Of a stretch of DNA of 64,000 nucleotides, positions 5,504-63,762 are shown piece by piece; positions within the stretch are counted from its first letter, which is position 1, and every line of letters starts with the position of its first letter. The DNA lies in the sequence record MN988522.1, one strand, 5' to 3'. A program made the position numbers and the translations under genes. Below the pieces are notes generated by a model, which had not been told where the DNA came from, made no database searches, and saw only the letters and a program-made list of their open reading frames with translations.

Positions 5504-5532
5504 CAGCGAATCTGACGTCTAAAAGCCTTCCT
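5504..5532 (+). promoter_or_regulatory. Bipartite motif CAGCGAA-N12-AAGCCTTCCT, candidate phage-specific promoter (copy 1)
   Basis: Intergenic, 32 nt upstream of the HD/polymerase operon; identical boxes and spacing at 17112-17140 (-) and 63734-63762 (+). Confidence 0.65.
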
Positions 5533-5564: not shown

Positions 5565-6236
5565 ATGAAAGACATTGTCTTTAATCCTCTCCTTAAGATC
5601 TCTAGTGTGAACCGGTATTCCGGAGTTTATCTGACCAAGAATGAGTCAGTTTCAGATCACACTACTCAAACTGGATTACTATGTATTCTAGTTGGCAACG
5701 AGATCAATAAACGTCTTGCGAAATTGAAATCCTCTGTTAGAGTGAATCTCGAGAAATTAGCCTACAAGGCTTTAATCCACGATCTCGAGGAATCCAAGAC
5801 TTGTGACACTCCTAGAAATGTTAAATACTTCAATGACTTGATTTATCAAGAATTTGAGAGAATGGGTGATCAGGTTGTTCTTGAACTATCTGAACTCTAT
5901 GAATTTCCTGAGCTCTATGAGCAATGGAAAAATGCTAAGGATAAGACTCTAGAAGGGTATATTCTTAAAATCTGCGATATGATTCATGTCGTACGTAAAC
6001 TAGTTGATGAAGTTGTACTTCTTGGAAATCTTAACATGCTTCAGGTAGCACTGGAGTTGAAGGATCATCTGAAGAAGACTCACGATTATATTAATAAGAT
6101 TACAGATCTACCTGCTGAAGCGATTGACGTCTTTAATGAATTGACGATTTTCTCATTGGATACCGTTAACTATATTCTTAAGAAACATCAATCGGAGATT
6201 ACAGATTATAACTTTACATCTCTGAAGAGCGCATAA
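5565..6236 (+). CDS. HD-domain 5'-deoxynucleotidase (YfbR-like)
   Basis: NRY...ESVSDH...HDLEES..CDTPRNVKYFN...KICD matches the YfbR pattern; its stop overlaps the polymerase start (TAATG). Confidence 0.8.
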   Translation: MKDIVFNPLLKISSVNRYSGVYLTKNESVSDHTTQTGLLCILVGNEINKRLAKLKSSVRVNLEKLAYKALIHDLEESKTCDTPRNVKYFNDLIYQEFERMGDQVVLELSELYEFPELYEQWKNAKDKTLEGYILKICDMIHVVRKLVDEVVLLGNLNMLQVALELKDHLKKTHDYINKITDLPAEAIDVFNELTIFSLDTVNYILKKHQSEITDYNFTSLKSA

Positions 6237-9200
6237 TGTCCTTAGAAATTGAATCCATTATTAACAAAGTTGATCTGACTAGTGATGTTCGTGTATGTCA
6301 CATGTGCCCACTAGCTGAGAAGTTTGGTGGATGTGATAATCTTGGACGAGTATCTTTTGAGATTGTAGGTCAGAATCCTAAGGTTCTACTTGTAGGTGAA
6401 GCACCTGCAGCTGAGGATCTGAAATCTGAACGACCATTCAGTAGTCAGTCTGGTTCATTCTTGAGAATGGCGATGGCTGAAATTGGCATTAATGATTACG
6501 CTCTAGCGAATGTGATCATGTGTCAACCTAAGAGTGTAAATATCTACACTCCGACTCCTGAAGAGTCCGCTCACTGTAAAGCACATATTCAAAGATTTGT
6601 TGAAAAGTACAAACCTGAGACAGTCATCTTGCTCGGACGAGGAGCATATGAAGTCATTCTACCAGAGAGTTACTTCGCAGGTCAGTCAGTTACGAATGTA
6701 ACCAAGAAGAAGGCTATCGAAATTGATGGTGTACGTTATGGAGCAGCATTTCATCCATCGTATATCTTCCGTAATGGTGGTAAAGAATCACCACAGTACA
6801 TCGACTTCTTGAATCGATTGAGACGACTGACTCAGAATAGTGTTGATGCAGAATTCATCGTACCGTTTAAGATCGTTAATCTCGATCAACTAGATGAGAC
6901 TCTCGAAGAGTTTGATGTCTACAAAGAACTAGGCTTCGACTATGAAGGTACCTCGCTTGATCCGTATGACGTCAATTATCAGGTTCTCGGACTTGGTATG
7001 TCATCGATGGACAAGGCAGTTTATATCGACTTTCATCGAGAGCCTACTCAAGAAGAAAAGAATAAGATATCTGACTTCATTCGTAAGAAGCAGATGTGGG
7101 TTTATAACGTCAACTATGAAACCAAAGTTACATGGTCTAAGTTGAGTAATGATCTTATTCGATTCCACGATGCGATGACTCTTGTAAAGATCGACTGTTC
7201 TCCTGGATCACTGAAGGACAATGCTCGTAAATATCTGAATGCAGAAATCTGGGAAGAGATCGTAGGTAACTTGACTACCTTGTTCTACGATATCTTCCAA
7301 TTTATGAAGAAGATTGAGGAGAAATCTCCTAAACTATATAATGCTTGTAGACAAGCTAATATGGAGGCGATCTATCTTCTTAAGGAAGATACTGCTGAGA
7401 AAATCACTGGTGGTAAGAAGAATCCTAAGGTTACGAGATATCGTACCAAGCAGGCAGATCATGCAGACTACATATCTGCTAAGATCTCTGCACTTAGAGA
7501 ATTCTGCTCTGATGAAGATATCCAACGTGGATTTACTAAGTTTCCTTACGAGTGGGCAGCTGTTCCTCCGAAGATTCTAGGTGAATACTGCTGCTACGAC
7601 TCTTATTACACACTAGGTCTTAAGAATCATCTGTGGGATAAGTATAAGAGCGTTTACCAGTATTATATCACCCAAGGGTGGCTAGGCTCTACGATGGAGA
7701 GCTATGGTCTGAATTGGGATGATGATAAAGCTTCTGAGCATGAACGATTCTATCTCGTTGAAGCTACGACATGCTTGAATCAGATCATTCAGAAATTGGA
7801 TTTTGGTGAGAAAACTCTTGATATTCATACAAGAGCAAGCATGATTTTCAATGACTCTAGTCTTCCTGATGCTAGGAAACTCATTGATCTGAAAGGTATC
7901 TTTAATCCAGGTACTCCAGATAAACTTAAACAGAAACCCTTCTGGGATAAGTACGTAACTGACTTTACGACTGCAATATCCATCTATCTTGTTCTCAGTG
8001 AACAGATTCTAATGTCTCCAATCATTCCTGACCAAGCGATTGAGTTAGTCGATCGTCAAGATCTCAATAAAGCTATTGAGAATTTGATGTCAGTAGATTG
8101 GACTAAGTACGATGGAGTTGATCTTAAGACTGCCAAGTCAATTCAGAAATTGATGATGGATCTTATTGGTACACTCGATGAGAAGATCGGATGGAAGCTA
8201 TATGCATTCAGAAGTGATGTTCTAGAGTGGCAATATAAAGCTCACGAAACGTACGGTGGACTAGATATCGACAATCGTGAGACTTGGACTCCTGAGTTCG
8301 AGTTGTTATATCTTCTGAGAAGATATAAAAAGGTTGAGAAGAGTAAGAATACGTACATCAATGGTAAGGTAGGTAGAGCACGAGTATGGTTGTCGACAGT
8401 CGATGATTACCAGAAGCCTCCTGTTCGACTGAAGCGTTACTTTGATGTTATGGAAGAGAGACAGTGGAAGAAGTATGAACTTCAGCATAACGAGAGATGG
8501 ATTCTTGATACAGAATTCAATGTTGCTGGTGCAAATACTAAACGATGGAAAGCAGCTATTCATACTGTTCCATGGGGATCAGAACTCCGAGAGATCTATG
8601 CATCTCGTTGGTGGGATGGTCTGTTTATGCATTACGACTACTCTCAGGCAGAAGTTCGAATTCTAGCAGCTATCTCTCAGGATAGAGCACTACTGGAAGC
8701 ATTCGCTGATCCTGATACTGACATTCACATGTTCGTTGCATCTCGAATCTGGAAGAAAGATCCTAAGGATGTGACTCCAGCTGAGCGTCGATATGCTAAG
8801 GTCTGCTCGTTCTCGATTTTGTACGGTAAGTCTATCGAAGGATTTGCTACTGAACATACCAAGGGTGATGTTGCAGCAGCTAAGCGTATCTTTGATGACT
8901 TCTATGCAGCATTCCCTCAAGTTAAGGAGTGGATTGAGAAACAGCATAGAGATGCGAAAGTATCTGGTAAGGTCTTTACCTTATTCGGAGATCCTCTGTA
9001 TCTTGATATGTCGGACCCTAATGGTGCTATGCGTGATGCTCAAAACTGGCCAATTCAGTCCTCGAGCAGCTGTGTAGCAGGATGGGCTATCTGGATGAAC
9101 TACGAGTTTTCTAGAAATAGAAACATTCCGATTCTTCCAATGGTCTTTACTCACGACTCTCACGATATGGAATTCAGATGTCAACATCTATTCGAGACGA

Positions 9201-9565
9201 TTGATACTGTTCTCGAAACTGCAGTTGATCTACCTAAGCGTAGATTTAATCTTCCGATGAAGATCGACTGGGAAATCGGTGTTAATCAGTCTGATGCAAT
9301 TGAGTTCAAAGAAACATCTCGATTTGATGAAGGTCGAGGTCGTACGTATCACTTTGAATGCAATGAAAATGCAATGATGCCTGTATTCGATCGTCTAAAG
9401 AACTACTTTGACATCGAATATGAAGTCACTTCTAGAGAGACTGAGAGAGCATCGCTGAAAGAAATGTTCGTTGCAAGACGAGCATTCTCTAAGTATCTTG
9501 GTACAGATGTAACCGTCGTAGGTGGTAACCTCAAACTAGTGAAGAAAAATGGGATAAAAATATGA
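6236..9565 (+). CDS. polA: Family A DNA polymerase with N-terminal family-4 uracil-DNA glycosylase domain and 3'-5' exonuclease
   Basis: UDG: CHMC, VGEAP, RPF, ANVIMC, FHPSY. Exo: FDYE, YCCYD. Pol motif A DYSQAEVRILA, motif B RRYAKVCSFSILYG, motif C THDS. Confidence 0.92.
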   Translation: MSLEIESIINKVDLTSDVRVCHMCPLAEKFGGCDNLGRVSFEIVGQNPKVLLVGEAPAAEDLKSERPFSSQSGSFLRMAMAEIGINDYALANVIMCQPKSVNIYTPTPEESAHCKAHIQRFVEKYKPETVILLGRGAYEVILPESYFAGQSVTNVTKKKAIEIDGVRYGAAFHPSYIFRNGGKESPQYIDFLNRLRRLTQNSVDAEFIVPFKIVNLDQLDETLEEFDVYKELGFDYEGTSLDPYDVNYQVLGLGMSSMDKAVYIDFHREPTQEEKNKISDFIRKKQMWVYNVNYETKVTWSKLSNDLIRFHDAMTLVKIDCSPGSLKDNARKYLNAEIWEEIVGNLTTLFYDIFQFMKKIEEKSPKLYNACRQANMEAIYLLKEDTAEKITGGKKNPKVTRYRTKQADHADYISAKISALREFCSDEDIQRGFTKFPYEWAAVPPKILGEYCCYDSYYTLGLKNHLWDKYKSVYQYYITQGWLGSTMESYGLNWDDDKASEHERFYLVEATTCLNQIIQKLDFGEKTLDIHTRASMIFNDSSLPDARKLIDLKGIFNPGTPDKLKQKPFWDKYVTDFTTAISIYLVLSEQILMSPIIPDQAIELVDRQDLNKAIENLMSVDWTKYDGVDLKTAKSIQKLMMDLIGTLDEKIGWKLYAFRSDVLEWQYKAHETYGGLDIDNRETWTPEFELLYLLRRYKKVEKSKNTYINGKVGRARVWLSTVDDYQKPPVRLKRYFDVMEERQWKKYELQHNERWILDTEFNVAGANTKRWKAAIHTVPWGSELREIYASRWWDGLFMHYDYSQAEVRILAAISQDRALLEAFADPDTDIHMFVASRIWKKDPKDVTPAERRYAKVCSFSILYGKSIEGFATEHTKGDVAAAKRIFDDFYAAFPQVKEWIEKQHRDAKVSGKVFTLFGDPLYLDMSDPNGAMRDAQNWPIQSSSSCVAGWAIWMNYEFSRNRNIPILPMVFTHDSHDMEFRCQHLFETIDTVLETAVDLPKRRFNLPMKIDWEIGVNQSDAIEFKETSRFDEGRGRTYHFECNENAMMPVFDRLKNYFDIEYEVTSRETERASLKEMFVARRAFSKYLGTDVTVVGGNLKLVKKNGIKI

Positions 9566-10293
9566 GTCGAGCAAAATCACTGATCGACATGATTAAAGGA
9601 ACCAAGAACGAGTCTGGTGACGATGACGACGAAATCTCAAATCGTCGTCGTGGTGGTACTTGGATTGATCCTCATCATGTTGACGCAGCATCCAAGAATC
9701 TGAAGCGTACTCAGTCATTCTACAAGAAGGCTAGTAATGCTAGCTCAGTTGAAGATCAAGAGTATTGGTTAGCTCGAGTCTTTAACAAGAATGCTGTTGC
9801 TAAGAGAATCTCCTCTGGATTCTATAACAAGGAAGCTAAGGCAGGAGTCGTAGGCGTCGATGACGTTGAAGATCTGTCAGCATCTCTTGTTACAGGTAAT
9901 CCAAGAGCATCGGGTCGTGTTACGACTAAGGATCACACACGTAATCCTGAAGAGATCTTTGCTGCTAACCAGATCGTTAAAGCTCTCTACGATACGATTG
10001 ACAAGAAGTGGCCTGGACGTCCTCAGAACAAGATGGTTCTGACATACTTCCTCAAGGTCAATAAAGCTGATCATCTTATTAACTTTAAGCTTCCATACGA
10101 TGATCGTGTGGAAGAAATCATCTCTTCTATTGAGAAATATGCTAAAGACAATAACTCCAAGATTACTTGGACTACTCCTAAGCAGTTTCAGAATTTTTCA
10201 GGTATTGAAGACAGAATGTATGCAAAGGTCATGCAGTTCCTAGCAGATAATGCTGTAGAATTGGGTGCTCTTATCATTCGAGGTAAGAAATAA
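9562..10293 (+). CDS. Putative sigma-factor-like protein A, with candidate capsid-targeting N-terminus
   Basis: Paralog of 10736-11392 (shared EYW..VF..N and VL[TS]YF blocks); NPEEIFAANQIVKALYDTID...VLTYF resembles the sigma region 3-4 linker; starts MSRAKSLIDMI. Confidence 0.45.
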   Translation: MSRAKSLIDMIKGTKNESGDDDDEISNRRRGGTWIDPHHVDAASKNLKRTQSFYKKASNASSVEDQEYWLARVFNKNAVAKRISSGFYNKEAKAGVVGVDDVEDLSASLVTGNPRASGRVTTKDHTRNPEEIFAANQIVKALYDTIDKKWPGRPQNKMVLTYFLKVNKADHLINFKLPYDDRVEEIISSIEKYAKDNNSKITWTTPKQFQNFSGIEDRMYAKVMQFLADNAVELGALIIRGKK

Positions 10294-10640
10294 TGGACCA
10301 GAGAGTACTTGACGTTCTAGCTCAAGGATATATTAATCGTGAGCTTACACTACCAGCCGCTGATCTATCTAAGGCTGTTATTTATATTGTTAATTATCAT
10401 GTTAGACATAAGACAAGTGGACTGGCAGATCTAAAGACTGCTTATGGTAGTCCTGAGTCTTCTAATCTGGCAGTTAGGTTCTACTCTACAGGTCTATTTA
10501 ATGGTGTTGTAGATAATGATTCTAAGAGCTCAGATCTATTCTGGTCTCTATTCAATTCGATGACTACATCTCTGATGATTGAGTCCATCAATGAATCGTT
10601 AGCTGAATCCTCGAAAGAAGTTGAAGTGATCGCCGAATAA
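10293..10640 (+). CDS. Hypothetical protein with E-rich C-terminus
   Basis: Start overlaps the upstream stop (TAATG); ends MIESINESLAESSKEVEVIAE. Confidence 0.6.
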   Translation: MDQRVLDVLAQGYINRELTLPAADLSKAVIYIVNYHVRHKTSGLADLKTAYGSPESSNLAVRFYSTGLFNGVVDNDSKSSDLFWSLFNSMTTSLMIESINESLAESSKEVEVIAE

Positions 10641-10679
10641 AGGCGCTTACTTGTTGGGTAAATGGGTGCAGTTAGGCTC

Positions 10680-10711
10680 TTGGAGGGATTCTTATTCGGT
10701 GAGCCCTCCAA
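10680..10711 (+). promoter_or_regulatory. Intergenic hairpin upstream of sigma-like B
   Basis: TTGGAGGG / CCCTCCAA 8-bp inverted repeat, no U-tract. Confidence 0.4.
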
Positions 10712-10735
10712 GGCTTCCAGAAAGAGGGTAATGTA

Positions 10736-11392
10736 ATGGCTAGCGATAGACAGATGAAAGGTTACATCTGGGGAGAGCAAATCCTGGATCATGCTCACAT
10801 TGAGCATTATGCAAGGGCGATGAGATCCGATGATGTACGTACCGAGGAGTACTGGTACCAGGCAGTATTTCATGGGAAGAACCACTCTAAGGTTCTTCAG
10901 TCGGAAGTCTTTCATAAGAAAATCCGCAACAACGTTACAAATAAAGTAGAAGTTGAGACTCTGGTTTCTACTTCTAACTCTGACGTCGTTAATGATGTTC
11001 TAGCAGAGGAGAGAAAGAATGAAGTAAAATATTCTCGAGTTATCGAGGATGATAAGGTCGGTAATATGTCCGACTATCTTCCCGATGCAACTGTTGGGTT
11101 CTCAGTTATTATCAGAGAAATAGCTGACAAATGCAACGATGATGAAATCAAGGTCCTGAGCTACTTTGTATGTCAGGAACATCTGGATAATATCCTATTC
11201 GAGGGGAATTCGATTCATTCATCAAACGATCGCTTCAATCGTACGATCCTAGGTATCTGGGAAAAGAATGTGAAGAGCATCAATGATCTGAATCGATTTG
11301 TAGGTACTCGTGCTCGTGCTGATAAAGCTAGGTGGAGACTCTGCAATCTCTTGAAGAAGGAGTATCCTGAACTCTTGTCAGGAAAACGATGA
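10736..11392 (+). CDS. Putative sigma-factor-like protein B
   Basis: Paralog of 9562-10293; C-terminal KSINDLNRFVG..ADKARWRLCNLLKK resembles a region-4 HTH; located next to beta-prime. Confidence 0.5.
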   Translation: MASDRQMKGYIWGEQILDHAHIEHYARAMRSDDVRTEEYWYQAVFHGKNHSKVLQSEVFHKKIRNNVTNKVEVETLVSTSNSDVVNDVLAEERKNEVKYSRVIEDDKVGNMSDYLPDATVGFSVIIREIADKCNDDEIKVLSYFVCQEHLDNILFEGNSIHSSNDRFNRTILGIWEKNVKSINDLNRFVGTRARADKARWRLCNLLKKEYPELLSGKR

Positions 11393-11628
11393 GTCCATCT
11401 AACAAGCCCTATGACCCAAAGTTAGACACAATCATCTACGAAAATAGACATCCTGAAACGGGTTTGTGCATCTCGGTGCATAAATACGGAAGCAGTGAAC
11501 CGAAGATCAAGTTAGGTCCAAGAATCGTCGGTGACGACTCCAAACCTGTCTACTTGAAATTAGGTAGAATATCTATAAACGAGTTTTTGTGGATATCCGA
11601 GGTCCTAAAACCCTACGTTAAATCTTAG
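11389..11628 (+). CDS. PC4-like small ssDNA-binding/transcription cofactor
   Basis: YDPKLD...ISVHKYGSSEPKIKL...KLGRIS pattern typical of small PC4-fold proteins. Confidence 0.5.
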   Translation: MSPSNKPYDPKLDTIIYENRHPETGLCISVHKYGSSEPKIKLGPRIVGDDSKPVYLKLGRISINEFLWISEVLKPYVKS

Positions 11629-11640
11629 AGGATCTAAAAC

Positions 11641-14600
11641 ATGCAACTTTCTCTGAAGCCAGTCTCTCCAGAATCTGTACTCTTGACTTCACAAGGAGAG
11701 GTCAAGTCGTATGAGACTCTGAACTTCAAGACAGGTCTACCTGTTCGAGACGGTCTCTTGTGCCAGAAGGTATTCGGACCGATTAGAGACTACGTATGTG
11801 AATGCGGCAAGTACGATGGTAAGAAATACCAGGGACATACTTGTGAGAAGTGCGGTGTTACGGTAGCGAGTTCACGTGCTCGTACTGTGAGAATGGGTCA
11901 TATTGATCTTCAAGTTCCCATTCTTAATCCGTTGATGATCGAGTCGATCGAATCGATTATAGGTCTCCCATCCAGAAAGATGGAGGACTTTATGAAGAAC
12001 AAGATCTGCCTGAAATTTTCAGCATCTGGTACAGGTAATCTTGTTCGTAAGGACGGTACACGAGGTATCGCGTATTTTGTAGATCCTAAGGAATCTGATC
12101 CTCGATCTCCTACTCTGCAGCATACGAAGTCGTCTCTGGTTCTTTATGAACTCTTGACGGATCTCGATATTGAAGAGACGCTCAAAGTCAATGGATCCAA
12201 GATCCTGAAGACCTATGTGCAGAAGAACTTCCCTCTTTCTAATCTCTTCATTCGTTATCTACCGGTATCTCCAGCAGGATACCGTCCAGTCACTCGTATG
12301 AGAAACTACTATTCTCAGCATCCCAAGAATGACCTTTATCAGAAGATCATTCGACGTACTCTGCGAGTGAAGGAACTGGTTAATATCAATGCAGACTCAA
12401 TGATTCTTCAGGAAGAGGCAGGCATTCTGTATAAGTCTGTCGATCAACTCTTCACTGGAGGAGCTCGAGATGGCGATGGGAACCCTCTTCCTGGAACCAT
12501 TGAGAAGATGATGGGTAAGAGAGGTATTCTCCGAGGAAATCTTCTCGGTAAGCGTACCGACTACTCTGGACGTTCAGTTATCACTTCAGCAGGTGATCGT
12601 GTAGAAGTGGACCAGATTGGTCTACCTCGTAAGATGGCATACATCTTGTTTCGTCCTTTCATTCTCCGTTATCTGATGACGGAGTATCTGGATCATTATA
12701 CTGAAGCACTGAAGCACTACGAGAAGAAGACTGTTATCGCACTGAAGTCTCTCGAGATGGTAGCTAAGGATTATCCGATCATCATGAATCGTGCTCCTAC
12801 GCTTCATAGATACGGTGTAATGTCTTTCCGTACCAAGTTGGTAAATGGTAAGGCTATCCTCGTTCATCCGATTGTATGTTCTCCATTCAATGCAGACTTC
12901 GACGGAGATACTGTAGCTATCCACTTGCCTCTTTCAGCTAAGTCTGTTCAGGAGTGCAAAGATTATCTCATGCCTCAGAACAATCTCCTGTCTTCACTTG
13001 ATGGTGATCCGATCATCAATATGTCGCACGAGATGGTTATCGGTCTTGCTATCATGTCTCGTATTAAGGATCATGATAAGGGATTCGGTACATTCCGACG
13101 TATGGATGAGCTCGAGTATCTTCATACTGTCACCAATCCTCAGACTAGCCGTCCTACACTTGAGATCTACGATAGAATCAAGTGGAAAGATGAACGAGGA
13201 GTGACAGAGACGTGCTATGGTCGACTTCTTCTCGAGCAGACATTCAAGACCAAGAATCTTCCGAAGGACTTCTCTAAGAAGACTATTCGTCGGATGATCA
13301 GTGATGCGTACGACAAGCTTGGACCTGATGAACTGATTAAGGTACTGGATGTAGCTACTCAGCTTTCATTCAAGTATGCTACGAACTCTGGTTTCTCAGT
13401 TTCGATTGATGATTGTAAGGTACCTTCTACGAAACCTGCTAAGATTGCGAAAGCTAGAGAGCAGGAAGCTGAGAATTATCGTCAATTCGATAACAATGAA
13501 ATCAATCTTGCAGAGCGTCGAGAGAACAATATTCGTCTCTGGAACGATGTCTTTGAAGATCTTCATCACGATTGGATGAAAGAAGCAGGTGAGGACAATC
13601 CGGTAGTTCTTATGTATACTACTGGTGCTCGTGTTAGTAAGTCTCAGGTCAATCAGATCGGAGTCGCTAAGGGTCTTGTATCCAATGCACTCAATCAGAT
13701 CATCGAGAAGCCTATGGTTAACTCCTTCCGTGAAGGATTGTCGACGTTTGAGTACTTTGCATCTTGCTCTGGATCTCGTAAGTCCATGGCAGACAAGAAG
13801 AATCTGACTCCCAAGTCTGGTTATCTTACACGTCGAATGATTACTGCTAGCCGAGATTTCTTCATTAATTCAGATGATTGTGGTACCGATAAGGGTATCA
13901 TGCGTACGATGAAGTCCTCGTATGGACGTTATCGTTGCGACAATGGTGAGATGATTGGTACGAACAATAGTGAAGAACTCGTTAAGGTTCGTAGTCCGAT
14001 TCATTGTGAGTCGCATGGTGGTATCTGCGTTAAGTGCTACGGTATTGATCCTGCTAAGCGTAAGATCGTCACGAAGGGGTCCAACGTAGGAGCTATTGCA
14101 GCTCACTCGTTGACTGAATCTACAACTCAGATGACGATGCGTACCTTCCATACATCTGGTGCAGTCGTTCTGAAGGATAGTCCGATGGTCATTACTGCCC
14201 AGAAGGATGGTAAGATCAGCTGGGATACTCTTCATCCTGTCTACAGCAAGATTCATGTTGTTGCAGATATGGAAGATTGGGATACACCTCTCAATGATCG
14301 ATTGACGTATACAGTTCATAACAAGATGTCTCGCATTCTTGTTAAGGATGGTCAGTCTGTCAAGAAGGGTGATCCTCTAGCGATCTACGTTGATGAAGAT
14401 CTTGAGAGCGACGACGTCAGTGGATCGCTCCCTAAGATTGAATCTCTGTATGAAGGTCGAGTACCTCCGAAAGCGTACAAGTCAGTTATCTCGAAGGTAG
14501 CTGGTAAGATTGGTATTAACATCGGAGATGAAGGTCTTAAGATCTTCGTTGATGGTGAATACCAAGGTACTGCTCATCCTAAGACTCCGGTATTCGTTGC

Positions 14601-15024
14601 TCAAGGTCAGTATGTTGAAGCTGGTCAGACTCTCTCGTTTGGTTCTCCAGACGTAGTAGGTTTGTTCAAGGAGACAAAGGATCTTGATCTCGCTTACAAG
14701 GTCTTTGAGAAGACTCTGATGGATATCTACAATAAGGAAGGTCTCCAGCCAGTACCAACTCATTCGGAGATGATCTTCAGAGCGATGTCTAATCTGGTAT
14801 ACACCGAGAGTGGTCCTTATGGTCTTCGATCCCATGGAGACAAGGGTAGCATTATGCTGAAGGGTATTACTCAGATTGGTGCGAATCATCCGTCCTGGTT
14901 GAAGTCAATCGGATTCGGATGGGTAGCTCAGACGATCAGAACTTCTGCTGTGAATCTTGCTACCACGTACGATCTTCCTACCGAACGTCTGATGTCTGGT
15001 GAATTGATTTACGAGGATAAATAA
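11641..15024 (+). CDS. rpoC: DNA-directed RNA polymerase beta-prime subunit, unsplit, bacterial type
   Basis: Zn ribbon DGLLCQKVFGP..CECGKY..CEKCGV..RMGHI; GNLLGKRTDYSGRSVI; NRAPTLHR; catalytic NADFDGD at 12889-12909; bridge helix TPKSGYLTRR; trigger loop TQMTMRTFHTSG. Confidence 0.97.
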   Translation: MQLSLKPVSPESVLLTSQGEVKSYETLNFKTGLPVRDGLLCQKVFGPIRDYVCECGKYDGKKYQGHTCEKCGVTVASSRARTVRMGHIDLQVPILNPLMIESIESIIGLPSRKMEDFMKNKICLKFSASGTGNLVRKDGTRGIAYFVDPKESDPRSPTLQHTKSSLVLYELLTDLDIEETLKVNGSKILKTYVQKNFPLSNLFIRYLPVSPAGYRPVTRMRNYYSQHPKNDLYQKIIRRTLRVKELVNINADSMILQEEAGILYKSVDQLFTGGARDGDGNPLPGTIEKMMGKRGILRGNLLGKRTDYSGRSVITSAGDRVEVDQIGLPRKMAYILFRPFILRYLMTEYLDHYTEALKHYEKKTVIALKSLEMVAKDYPIIMNRAPTLHRYGVMSFRTKLVNGKAILVHPIVCSPFNADFDGDTVAIHLPLSAKSVQECKDYLMPQNNLLSSLDGDPIINMSHEMVIGLAIMSRIKDHDKGFGTFRRMDELEYLHTVTNPQTSRPTLEIYDRIKWKDERGVTETCYGRLLLEQTFKTKNLPKDFSKKTIRRMISDAYDKLGPDELIKVLDVATQLSFKYATNSGFSVSIDDCKVPSTKPAKIAKAREQEAENYRQFDNNEINLAERRENNIRLWNDVFEDLHHDWMKEAGEDNPVVLMYTTGARVSKSQVNQIGVAKGLVSNALNQIIEKPMVNSFREGLSTFEYFASCSGSRKSMADKKNLTPKSGYLTRRMITASRDFFINSDDCGTDKGIMRTMKSSYGRYRCDNGEMIGTNNSEELVKVRSPIHCESHGGICVKCYGIDPAKRKIVTKGSNVGAIAAHSLTESTTQMTMRTFHTSGAVVLKDSPMVITAQKDGKISWDTLHPVYSKIHVVADMEDWDTPLNDRLTYTVHNKMSRILVKDGQSVKKGDPLAIYVDEDLESDDVSGSLPKIESLYEGRVPPKAYKSVISKVAGKIGINIGDEGLKIFVDGEYQGTAHPKTPVFVAQGQYVEAGQTLSFGSPDVVGLFKETKDLDLAYKVFEKTLMDIYNKEGLQPVPTHSEMIFRAMSNLVYTESGPYGLRSHGDKGSIMLKGITQIGANHPSWLKSIGFGWVAQTIRTSAVNLATTYDLPTERLMSGELIYEDK

Positions 15025-15027
15025 AGG

Positions 15028-15225
15028 ATGCAAGACCTATCTCAACTATGTGAAGTTGAGATGGAGAAGTTAGTTGAAATACTAATGAGATCGACTCACT
15101 TGACACTCGACGGTGTTGAGCTGAGTCGATCTCATGAATATCATAATAGCCCATCTGTCTCTACAATTAAAACTCATAAAGTCCTTGATGACTCATACAT
15201 TACAGTTAGACTGAAATATGTATAA
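15028..15225 (+). CDS. Hypothetical protein
   Basis: Starts 3 nt after the rpoC stop and overlaps the next gene; no motif recognised. Confidence 0.5.
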   Translation: MQDLSQLCEVEMEKLVEILMRSTHLTLDGVELSRSHEYHNSPSVSTIKTHKVLDDSYITVRLKYV

Positions 15226-15931
15226 CTTGCAATACGATGATGGAATTCTTAAATCAAATAGGGAGTCTCTCGTAAACATACGAGCTCCATTCTTCAAACG
15301 GATTGATCGACGATCTCGCAAGTCGTCCATCGAGAGATTAATGATCTCACCTGATACAACAAGAAATTGTAGTCAGATTAAGAGATTTCTCGTTCCGTTC
15401 AACGATAAGTACTTGTACAGCATGCATGTGACTTATCGTGACGACTTAAAGTGTCAATCTATTTATGACACTAACAAGTCTCTCAAGCGAATCCTCCGAT
15501 CTAAAATGTTAATGTCAGCTGTGAACAGGATAAATGAGTATCCTCAACTCAAAGCAGACATATTGTCTGTAATCAAGCTTGTAGTTAATTCTTGGGAGTT
15601 TGATGGTCTTATCACAGACATTGAATGGCTCCAGGATGAAAATCTACTGGATACTGTGATATCTAAGTGGAAACTGAAGAAGTACGAATCCTCTACAGAG
15701 CGAGGGTCAGTGATCAATCTCTTAATAAAGAGTTTTGATGGAGTTCCACTTAATCTTCTATCTCATCTAGAGATGAAGAAAATCAGTATTGAGGATACTG
15801 ACATTGAGGACGTTAAGTTTAAATGTCCTCTGATATTAATGCGATCGAATTCATCTTGTGCAGGATTCATATCTAAGTCCTTGGATAAAGGACTACCTGT
15901 GAGTCTGTTCAAGATTGATATAAAAGAGTAA
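15218..15931 (+). CDS. Hypothetical protein
   Basis: 237-aa ORF filling the space to the terminator. Confidence 0.65.
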   Translation: MYNLQYDDGILKSNRESLVNIRAPFFKRIDRRSRKSSIERLMISPDTTRNCSQIKRFLVPFNDKYLYSMHVTYRDDLKCQSIYDTNKSLKRILRSKMLMSAVNRINEYPQLKADILSVIKLVVNSWEFDGLITDIEWLQDENLLDTVISKWKLKKYESSTERGSVINLLIKSFDGVPLNLLSHLEMKKISIEDTDIEDVKFKCPLILMRSNSSCAGFISKSLDKGLPVSLFKIDIKE

Positions 15932-17111: not shown

Positions 17112-17140
17112 AGGAAGGCTTATGTCGCCTTCCTTCGCTG
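17112..17140 (-). promoter_or_regulatory. Bipartite motif copy 2, overlapping a terminator-like hairpin
   Basis: Minus strand reads (ATT)CAGCGAA-GGAAGGCGACAT-AAGCCTTCCT; AGGAAGGC/GCCTTCCT also forms an 8-bp stem just after the SGNH gene. Confidence 0.6.
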
Positions 17141-35822: not shown

Positions 35823-38800
35823 TTAAGAGATTGTAAGTCTGATATTACGAATTGCAGGAGCAGTTGTAAAGTCAGTCTTGTCTAGAGTTAATCTCAGTCG
35901 ACTTGCGTTAGCAGCCAGACCTGTATACGTGTAGACTGAAGTCGTCCACTCGTTACCGATTTGAGTACTAGATACGAAAGTCATTGAGGCAAACGATGAG
36001 TTAGCCAACTGGACTGATGGTTGGAAGGTTGACCCTGTAGGAACATACTGATCGATAACGAGCTTGAGAGTCGCTGGCGTAGTAGATCCATTAGGAATGT
36101 CAAACTGACGAGAAGTATACGTACCAGGCTTAACAGGTGTTCCACCATATAAGCAGAGACCCTTTCCGATAATCGGAGACTTGTTAGTAGATGATGAGAT
36201 CATATCTACTTTAAGTAGAACCGTACCAGAAAGTGGGACTGTATAGAGAGGAATACCAGGAGTGATATCGTACTGAGTACCTGCTTGATCCTGAAGATAG
36301 AATCTTGCTGTTGTACTCTGAGGAACCGTAATCGTCTCGTCTGATAGAACCCAATCAGAGATTGAGGTCAATCCTGTTAGAGTTAGAAGTGTAGCTGTCG
36401 AAGTTCCACTAGTGTAGACAGCTTTTCTCAGAATCATCGTCAAGTCAGAGTCCTGGAATGCAGTCCATGTAGACTCGTTAGCCGAGACCTGGAATACACC
36501 ACCATAAGGCTGCTGAGTGACACGCTTCTGAGTAAGCATATCATTGTAACCGAGTTTAGCAATACCTACTGAACCAGCAGGTTGAGATGTAAGTACAACA
36601 AGTGCCTTTTCATCACCTCGGGATACAGGAATTGGAGACTCGAATGAAATCTTATTCCAACCTGCTACAACACTAGCTTTCTTAATACGACCAGACTCTG
36701 ACTGCGTAGCAGATAAAGGAATACCGTATTCAGCTTCTGCTACCTTGGTAACGATATCGTCATCTGGCAGCTCTGTAACATACAGTGAAACTGATGTCAA
36801 GTCACCGTCATCTTCATCCAGAACGAATGTTTCAGCGATCGGATCGTAATAAACAACTTCAGTAGTAGCCGTCGTCATGACACGAAGGACCGCACTGGCA
36901 GTCGTATTACTTGACAGTCCTACACCTTTGATCTCGTAGTTGTTAGTAGGCGTACCTGCTGCAACTGAGAGGTTATAAGTGTAAGCACCGCTACCATCTG
37001 CTGTTACGTTCTGACTGATGGAACGATACGTAATATGAATCGTTTCACCTGGAGCAAATCCTAAGAATCGAGCCTGAACAGTTTCTGTCGTGATCGTACT
37101 AGTCTTAGTCTGAGACGTCAACGGAGTTGAGAACAGATCACGAATTGTATTCCAGACGTTCTTCTTCCAAGATCCTGTAGCAGATGGAATTGTACGATAC
37201 TGATACCAGATCGTAGTCTGCGTGATATTGGATGGAGTTAACTGGAGCTGACCAATAGGAGGTGCACCTGCAACTGCATAAGGATTGATCTTCTGACTAG
37301 TCGTAACTTGTGTCTGACTAATTACATCAGTTTCCGTGAATGGAAGAGTTGTAGTAGCAGATGTAACACCAAGTCTGTTGTATGTTGAATCAAGAATCAG
37401 AGATTCAAGATACAGAATCATATTGTTAGTAAGACCTAGGTCTTGCTTAACATTCGACTTCAAGTTATCAACGAACAGATTTCTCTTGTTAGTTGTCGGA
37501 TCTGTTGAACGTGCACTATCCATTAGCGATAGAGTTGCAACATTATCTTCAACTGAGAAGAGTCTTGATTTCAGACTATTCAATTCTGACTGCGGAATAT
37601 TAGTAACGGTATCTGCAGTAATTACAGGATTCGAACCATTGATCAATTCGATCGTGAACAGTGAAAGAGCATTGCTCAGATACTGCGGAGGATTATAAGT
37701 TGTATAACCTGGAGTACCTCTACTGATAACGAACTGCTTGTTCTCAGTAATACTGAGACGATCAATACGTTTCAAGAAGTAGTCGTAGTCAACGTAGAAC
37801 ACACTACCATTAACAAGAACGTTACTTGAATCAAGAACGACTCCTAGACCGTCACCTGAAATCGTAGGTACGAACGTCGAGATGTAAGTATAAGTTACAG
37901 TGTAGGTTGAACCTGGAGCAGGTTCAGCACCACCTGGAGACCAGTTAATACTATCACCTGATACAATGTAATCTGTGTTTACAACGTAAGTCGTACCACC
38001 TTGTGTAACGGATGATACTGCAAGAACTGGAGTATCTGGCAGTACGTCAATCGCTCCTGAGAAGCTACCGTGCGTAATCGTACGAGTTACAGACTTAGTA
38101 CCTTGAATACGAGTTACTGTATTGATCTTATTGTATCGAAGATTGTACGTTGCACTACCTGTGTAGGTATATGGTTCACCAGCTACTGCACGATTGTCAA
38201 CAACAGGGTCGAATAGAACCTTCTGCTGAGTTTCAATGATAACTGGTACACCATTCACACGAGCTTTACCAGAACTGATATTAACAATCGCAGAATTACT
38301 ACCATCGAATGAGTCAAACGATGCACTCATACCATAAAGAACAGTACTACCACGAGTTTCTCTATCGTACTGGTTAAGAAGCTTATTCATAACCAAGGAT
38401 ACATCATCAGTCTGACGAGAGATCGTCTGAATGACACCATCAACAATAGTGATAATCGGGAAGAATACTTCATCACCGGTTAGCTCACCTTGTGCGATCC
38501 ATCTTGCAGACATCTTCTCGCGCATAGCACCTGGCTGACCTACGTTAGGAGATGCAGGATCTGGCTCGAGAATGAGAGGATCTTCAAGTTCAGTGATGAG
38601 AACAGTCTTAGCAGCAACACCTACAACGTAGGTGCCAGTTGCAGTAATCGGAACTACTCGAGTAGGTACTTGAGCGGTTACACCATCAAGATATACCGTA
38701 GCATTCTTAAGAGTGATACCTGTAGTTGTAACAGCTTCAACTTCACCACCAGTAAGAATGCTACCGTTAGTGACAAGCTGAGTTAGAATGAGCTTTAGAT

Positions 38801-63733: not shown

Positions 63734-63762
63734 CAGCGAATTGAGCTCTCAAAAGCCTTCCT
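63734..63762 (+). promoter_or_regulatory. Bipartite motif copy 3
   Basis: CAGCGAA-TTGAGCTCTCAA-AAGCCTTCCT, pointing out of the window. Confidence 0.6.

Follow-up and report, generated by a model that had tools for sequence, protein, structure and literature searches.

A lone RNA polymerase beta-prime subunit in Rhizobium phage RHph_TM40 and its relatives, and its possible assembly with host subunits

Rhizobium phage RHph_TM40 encodes an intact bacterial-type RNA polymerase (RNAP) beta-prime subunit, and no gene for the partner subunits beta, alpha or omega could be found with it. The gene (positions 11641-15024, plus strand) lies in a 64,000-nucleotide (nt) stretch of record MN988522.1, hereafter the window, which is 100% identical to positions 143432-207431 of the 207,431-bp circular RHph_TM40 record and spans its last 64 kb. 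RHph_TM30 is 98.9% identical to the window, and both phages are placed in the Kleczkowskaviridae, genus Cuauhnahuacvirus. GenBank lists the open reading frame (ORF) as EVB94_327, 'DNA-directed RNA polymerase beta' subunit protein', and the beta-prime identity is therefore already on record. The literature searched contained nothing on a missing partner subunit of the RHph beta-prime, nor on a takeover strategy based on subunit exchange, and yielded no biochemical data on assembly of the protein into an active core. Given a complete, conserved beta-prime but no phage beta, a hybrid with host subunits is the most likely arrangement. On the sequence evidence we lean, if only slightly, towards a chimeric core in which the phage beta-prime would join host beta, alpha and omega under the direction of phage factors.

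The first-pass annotation of the window, made from the sequence alone, had described a single ORF of 1127 amino acids (aa) holding a Zn ribbon, NADFDGD, bridge helix and trigger loop. Its coordinates proved exact, and both Pfam and phmmer support the description. The five Rpb1 domains (PF04997, PF00623, PF04983, PF05000 and PF04998) occur in order, each over the Pfam cut-off, and phmmer against PDB chains aligns a bacterial beta-prime colinearly across residues 8-1050 (E 4e-152). Motif positions and alignments place the following elements, all on the plus strand. The N-terminal Zn ribbon (CxC-x12-CxxC; C53, C55, C68, C71) is at 11797-11853. The clamp helices, the docking site for sigma region 2, are at 12322-12465 (aa ~228-275); here R239 and E259 are the counterparts of R275 and E295 in E. 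coli, which are known determinants of sigma binding. The catalytic NADFDGD motif follows at 12889-12909 (aa 417-423). Alignment to PDB chains and motif position further locate the bridge helix region at 13762-13866 (aa ~708-742, containing SGYLTRR at aa 726-732), the second Zn site at 13876-14043 (C747, C789, C796, C799) and trigger-loop helix 1 at 14125-14151 (TQMTMRTFH, aa 829-837). A shortened SI3-like trigger-loop insert of about one sandwich-barrel hybrid domain (SBHM) is at 14242-14520, as judged from a Biotin_lipoyl_2 match at aa 898-915 and the map of insertions and deletions. Compared with the beta-primes of Rhizobium and Vibrio, the insert has lost ~100 aa; the only further losses are five deletions of 12-21 aa and shorter termini. 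The conserved motifs suggest that the phage beta-prime is catalytically competent.

No beta lies adjacent to beta-prime in the window; downstream are genes of 65 aa (g5) and 237 aa (g6), followed by oppositely oriented structural genes. The earlier statement that the window holds no beta or alpha was borne out, and hidden Markov model (HMM) searches extend the absence to whole genomes. Six-frame searches with models for beta (Rpb2_6, Rpb2_7 and TIGR02013, rpoB), alpha (RNA_pol_A_bac) and omega (Rpb6) gave no match at E<=10 in RHph_TM30 (TM30), in the Vibrio phages Va2, 1.031.O and 150E35-1, or in the E. coli phage EP_H11, all of which carry a homologous beta-prime. Likewise, Rpb2_6 had no match in the complete 207-kb RHph_TM40 (TM40) record. 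As controls, Rpb1_2 was detected in all five of the former records, and in the same six-frame search Rpb2_6 was detected at ~1e-31 in Cobetia phage Carin-5 and Yersinia phage YerA41 (1e-39 to 1e-40 by direct hmmscan). The proposed search of the rest of the genome for rpoB, rpoA and rpoZ homologues has thus been run, and none was found. The suggestion that a phage beta is encoded elsewhere is very unlikely, given no beta-model match in TM40, TM30 and four related phages with a lone beta-prime, and positive controls.

A beta might still have diverged beyond recognition, been split into small pieces, or reside on unassembled DNA. The polymerases of crAss-like and some jumbo phages were recognised only via structure. 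Moreover, YerA41 and Carin-5 carry a beta beside their beta-prime, and TM30 has unexplained proteins of 749, 507 and 471 aa without a Pfam match. However, the window beta-prime is readily recognised, and the betas of YerA41 and Carin-5 are detected at 1e-31 to 1e-40 even though the beta-primes they accompany have diverged further. With filters switched off, the betas of Carin-5 and YerA41, used in phmmer and as a two-sequence profile, picked up only noise across all stop-to-stop frames of TM30 and EP_H11, the best match (E 0.014) being the antisense of gyrA; Carin-5 beta-prime retrieved TM30 beta-prime at 1.6e-73. A tblastn search with Carin-5 beta against 50,697 phage records matched no RHph phage, nor Va2, 1.031.O, 150E35-1, EP_H11 or IME392. 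None of the large unexplained TM30 proteins is common to EP_H11. The 41 proteins that these two phages share comprise replication genes, beta-prime and the entire structural module; none of them is a sizeable protein of unknown function that might represent an overlooked beta. The six genomes searched are complete circular or linear records. We therefore consider an overlooked phage beta improbable, at somewhat under one chance in ten.

The beta-prime gene is intact, and purifying selection acts on it. When ten phage homologues, 25-56% identical to the window beta-prime, are aligned, N417, D419, D421, G422, D423, the four Zn-ribbon cysteines, Q830 and H837 are invariant in all ten; in the subset of the eight nearest (40-55% identity), invariance extends to the second Zn site, the bridge-helix motif and residues R239 and E259 of the clamp helices. 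TM30 and TM40 do not differ anywhere in the operon, so selection was assessed from orthologues in metagenomes, for which pairwise ratios of non-synonymous to synonymous substitution (dN/dS) are 0.13-0.20 across the whole length, with dS near saturation. This pattern fits an enzyme better than it fits a relic in decay or a protein that serves purely as a decoy. In the decoy, or assembly-poison, model the phage protein would sequester host beta, sigma or elongation factors and halt host transcription without making phage RNA. Phages often shut off the host polymerase, and the lack of a phage beta and the retention of the sigma-docking clamp-helix residues are both compatible with such a role. 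Yet a decoy has no need for the Asp triad, the bridge helix, the trigger-loop Q/H/R or both Zn sites, which are kept invariant, to the extent just given, across lineages of 25-56% identity, with the dN/dS values above applying to the entire length. Because the catalytic residues are invariant we disfavour this explanation, and regard it as unlikely though deserving of some weight.

Several homologues depart from the single-ORF form. In EP_H11 the beta-prime is split and its order permuted, with the C-terminal half (domains 3-5; L006:7908-9422) upstream of the N-terminal half (domains 1-2; L006:11002-12570) and two intervening genes of 228 and 251 aa. Genes of further relatives are interrupted by mobile elements. 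In Vibrio phage 150E35-1 a 251-aa ORF splits beta-prime (L008:8001-12803), an intein is found in the 1516-aa beta-prime of one metagenome phage (P0011; L028:10001-14551), and another in the family-A DNA polymerase (PolA) of a further metagenome relative (L022:4045-8079).

The phage beta-prime does not appear to be a recent capture from the host. A word-based protein search recovered metagenome relatives of 1120-1130 aa at 39-55% identity and then dropped to ordinary bacterial beta-primes at 32-35%; a search of viral contigs with the beta-prime protein alone found no relative. Among deposited RHph phages, seven encode exactly this protein and two others a version with 99.7-99.9% identity. We built the beta-prime phylogeny that the first-pass annotation had proposed, using 13 phage and 24 bacterial sequences (15 named phyla and one unclassified) and 760 well-filled columns under LG+G4, a quick model applied to a tree with long branches and an unknown root. 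All 24 bacterial beta-primes form one clade (SH-aLRT 100), and every phage sequence, that of the window included, lies on the other side of that branch. The lone beta-primes fall in two groups, one containing the window and seven metagenome sequences, the other Va2, 1.031.O and EP_H11. A topology constrained to group the lone beta-primes with Pseudomonadota was rejected (approximately unbiased test, p 0.0001), which argues against a recent origin from the host.

A promoter-like motif with fixed spacing, (A)GCGAA-N15-(A/T)AGCCTTCC(TT), is enriched ahead of TM30 genes. At least 17 copies are present in TM30, nearly all intergenic and oriented toward the next gene, tRNA clusters included. Three copies were observed in the window against 0.04 expected, and we conclude that the motif is real. 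One (CGAA-N15-CCTTCC; 5507-5531, plus strand) heads the operon at 5565-15931, which contains PolA, g1-g3 and beta-prime; a second (17113-17137, minus strand) stands ahead of a minus-strand prohead-core gene, and the third (63737-63761, plus strand) is at the end of the record and points across the circular junction towards gene 001. In the closest metagenome relative a copy occupies the position equivalent to 5507-5531 (L025:558-582). Matches to sigma70-type promoters are fewer in the region than in shuffled sequence (16 vs 29.8 +/- 5.5). The GCGAA-N15-CCTTCC-type motif, unlike sigma70 promoters, is probably the phage's own promoter class, and a phage sigma-like factor is the obvious candidate for its reader.

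Such a candidate is found in the neighbourhood of beta-prime. In six of six metagenome contigs the order g3 (200-248 aa, one clipped at a contig end), beta-prime, g5 (61-68 aa), g6 (211-245 aa) is kept, and in the four contigs reaching far enough PolA, g1 (217-514 aa) and g2 (~117-136 aa) also lie upstream. Oppositely oriented lysis and structural genes come after g6 in these relatives, and a beta gene is never present in the beta-prime block of the six contigs. In the window all of the following are on the plus strand. The UDG-fused PolA (6236-9565; Pfam UDG and DNA_pol_A), of the SP15-like group, is the first large gene of the operon. It is followed by g1 (243 aa, 9562-10293; 513 aa in some relatives) and g2, a conserved small gene of 115 aa between g1 and g3 (10293-10640), identified from the metagenome relatives. 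Next is g3 (218 aa, 10736-11392), a conserved partner whose orthologues lie directly upstream of beta-prime in the six metagenome relatives and which is a candidate sigma-like factor. A 79-aa ORF between g3 and beta-prime (11389-11628) has no equivalent at this place in the metagenome relatives. Downstream, g5 (65 aa, 15028-15225) starts 4 nt after the beta-prime stop and is present in all six relatives, though poorly conserved, and g6 (237 aa, 15218-15931) is conserved.

The case for g3 as a sigma-like factor comes from structure prediction and position. The protein is helical, and its AlphaFold model is confident only for residues ~120-215. In a VIA-align comparison of residues 117-218, 16 of the 18 top matches were to sigma region 4 (Z 5.1-6.3, root-mean-square deviation 1.6-4 A over 55-69 residues), a level below what is safe for helical domains; the resemblance of the predicted C-terminal domain to sigma region 4 is thus weak. 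Pfam sigma families gave no match in seven g3 orthologues even at E<=10, Sigma70_r2 had no match in the TM30 genome, Foldseek against PDB returned no match for g3 or g6, and comparison of g3 with the ESM Atlas (TM below 0.35) was uninformative. By sequence, g3 has a homologue in the Vibrio phages that is encoded immediately before beta-prime (hhalign 98%, E 5e-14); in EP_H11 the product of the gene preceding the N-terminal half of beta-prime shows weak similarity to g3 (E 4e-4). A distant paralogue is g1, which has a common EEYW..VFH/N motif (BLASTP E 6e-5; hhalign 89%, E 2e-6). Between g3 and the 'sigma' of Carin-5 and YerA41 no similarity was detectable (hhalign 0.1%).

The gene g6 is annotated in GenBank from 15341 (196 aa), but conservation among its orthologues reaches back to an ATG further upstream, at 15218, with the alignment conserved from residue 1, and the extra 41 residues fold confidently (pLDDT 86 for the model). 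The true product is therefore probably 237 aa, with an 8-nt overlap with the end of g5, and the GenBank start 41 codons too short. Its fold is confident and its best PDB matches are phosphoribosyltransferases (PRTases; Z<=4.8), which makes it weakly PRTase-like; it is not a beta. Comparison of g6 with the YerA41/Carin-5 PRTase showed no sequence similarity, and we therefore dropped the idea that this locus is the YerA41 locus minus beta. An omega-like role for g5 or g2 was unsupported, neither having informative features or an Rpb6 match.

The linkage of these genes raises the further possibility of a new minimal enzyme in which beta-prime works with the non-homologous linked proteins g1, g2, g3, g5 and g6 in place of beta. 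The g1-g6 genes do travel with beta-prime in the relatives examined. However, g3 is helical, the g6 model is a PRTase-like alpha/beta protein and not a beta-type barrel, and beta-prime retains the full bacterial architecture for contacting beta. Moreover, we know of no two-barrel polymerase that lacks the second barrel. We consider this explanation extremely improbable.

We return to the chimeric polymerase. During infection the phage beta-prime would join host beta, the alpha dimer and omega to give a chimeric core RNAP, in which the clamp, the clamp helices where sigma docks and one half of the active centre would be of phage origin. The g3 protein, with its putative sigma-region-4-like domain, and its paralogue g1 would then direct the chimeric enzyme to GCGAA-N15-CCTTCC promoters. 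Consistent with this are the conserved catalytic residues, the retained sigma-binding residues of the clamp helices, the linked sigma4-like protein and the phage-specific promoter-like motif. Several points weigh against it. The window beta-prime is only ~32% identical to that of Rhizobium. A look-up of sequencing runs, RNA or DNA, listed none for the gene. The sigma4 resemblance of g3 is weak (Z 5-6.3, in a helical domain), with no Pfam sigma match. On the tree the lone beta-prime sits with its counterparts from YerA41 and Carin-5, two phages that do encode a beta. Loss of a beta is thus possible, and taking on the host's beta as a new partner is no trivial step. The lone beta-prime is nearer to bacteria (~32%) than is that of Carin-5 (24%), which would fit a need for compatibility with bacterial beta, although this is an argument only.

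Comparison with known systems sets the arrangement apart from each of them. Bacterial RpoC is 31-35% identical to the window protein over nearly its full length and shares the order of Rpb1 domains 1-5, the Zn ribbon, clamp helices, NADFDGD, bridge helix, second Zn site and trigger loop with SBHM insert. Unlike RpoC, the window protein is encoded in a phage genome without rpoB, rpoA or rpoZ, is ~250-270 aa shorter (half of SI3, the five deletions and the shorter termini) and lies outside the clade of 24 bacterial sequences. YerA41 and Carin-5 belong to the same wider group by DNA polymerase (PMC12686479, PMC13697223), and in both a ~200-aa protein, annotated as a sigma factor in Carin-5, precedes beta-prime. 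All phage beta-primes lie on one side of the bacterial branch. In contrast to the Rhizobium, Vibrio and E. coli phages, where there is none, YerA41 and Carin-5 have a 924-927-aa beta directly downstream of beta-prime, and divergence of beta-prime is much greater in these two (branch length 2.4; 24% identity to bacteria). As these two phages carry both subunits, the wider group includes complete two-subunit enzymes; in YerA41 the RNAP subunits are early and virion-associated (PMC7354516).

The RNAPs of the phiKZ/AR9/PBS1 type have homologues of both beta and beta-prime, with each of the two divided among at least two polypeptides, and are host-independent and without sigma (PMC7824862). The window phage resembles them in encoding a homologue of the cellular two-barrel enzyme but differs in having a single unsplit beta-prime ORF and no beta, so that it is not of the split phiKZ/AR9 type. 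The premise that phage multisubunit RNAPs are always split does not hold in general, as Carin-5 has an unsplit beta-prime beside its beta. As in the T4 type of takeover (gp55, gp33, AsiA, MotA, Alt/Mod), a chimeric enzyme would depend on host core subunits redirected by small phage factors; T4, however, replaces no catalytic subunit, whereas the window phage would exchange the largest one. Q-beta replicase combines a phage catalytic subunit with host EF-Tu, EF-Ts and S1. The analogy here is functional only, in that one phage catalytic subunit works with host partners, since Q-beta replicase is RNA-dependent, has an unrelated fold and recruits host partners that are not polymerase subunits.

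The description of the source as a T4-like myovirus stands for the virion but not for replication. The head and tail modules are T4-like, the capsid protein matches Pfam Gp23 (E 4e-16), and sheath, tube and baseplate genes of a contractile tail are annotated. The replication module, by contrast, has the UDG-fused family-A polymerase (SP15-like) and not a T4-type family-B replicative polymerase (T4 PolB), and no family-B polymerase is annotated in the TM30 record. RHph_TM30, EP_H11 and IME392 are listed among phages with a YerA41-like DNA polymerase (PMC12686479), and the SP15-like DNA polymerase group includes EP_H11, SP-15, YerA41, Carin-5 and RP13, with hypermodified thymidine in several members (PMC13697223). 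Elsewhere in the TM30 record, a 248-aa gene (35958-36704) is annotated 'transcription termination factor Rho protein' and a 70-aa gene (68519-68731) 'transcriptional coactivator'; on annotation only, these are possible further transcription components of the phage. At 128636-142106 of the same record ~22 tRNA genes are interspersed with homing endonucleases beside a gene for a TROVE (Ro60-like) protein, and several copies of the promoter-like motif lie inside this tRNA array.

To our knowledge, phages are known to follow strategies of two types, either decorating or inhibiting the host polymerase with small factors or encoding a complete polymerase of their own. Exchange of beta-prime alone, if true, would be a third. 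Whether the related Rhizobium, Vibrio and E. coli phages indeed swap the host's largest catalytic subunit to form a hybrid core, with their own sigma-like factors and promoter type, we judge from the sequences to be about an even call, with adaptation to modified phage DNA as a possible part of it. Because the same phages carry a polymerase type linked to hypermodified thymidine, the finding may bear on the transcription of modified DNA, though this is speculative. If the exchange does occur, the bacterial core enzyme would tolerate a subunit only ~32% identical to its own, which would provide a handle on the beta-prime surfaces essential for assembly. Moreover, it could give a natural orthogonal transcription system, in which new sigma-like factors and a new promoter operate on a largely host-built enzyme.

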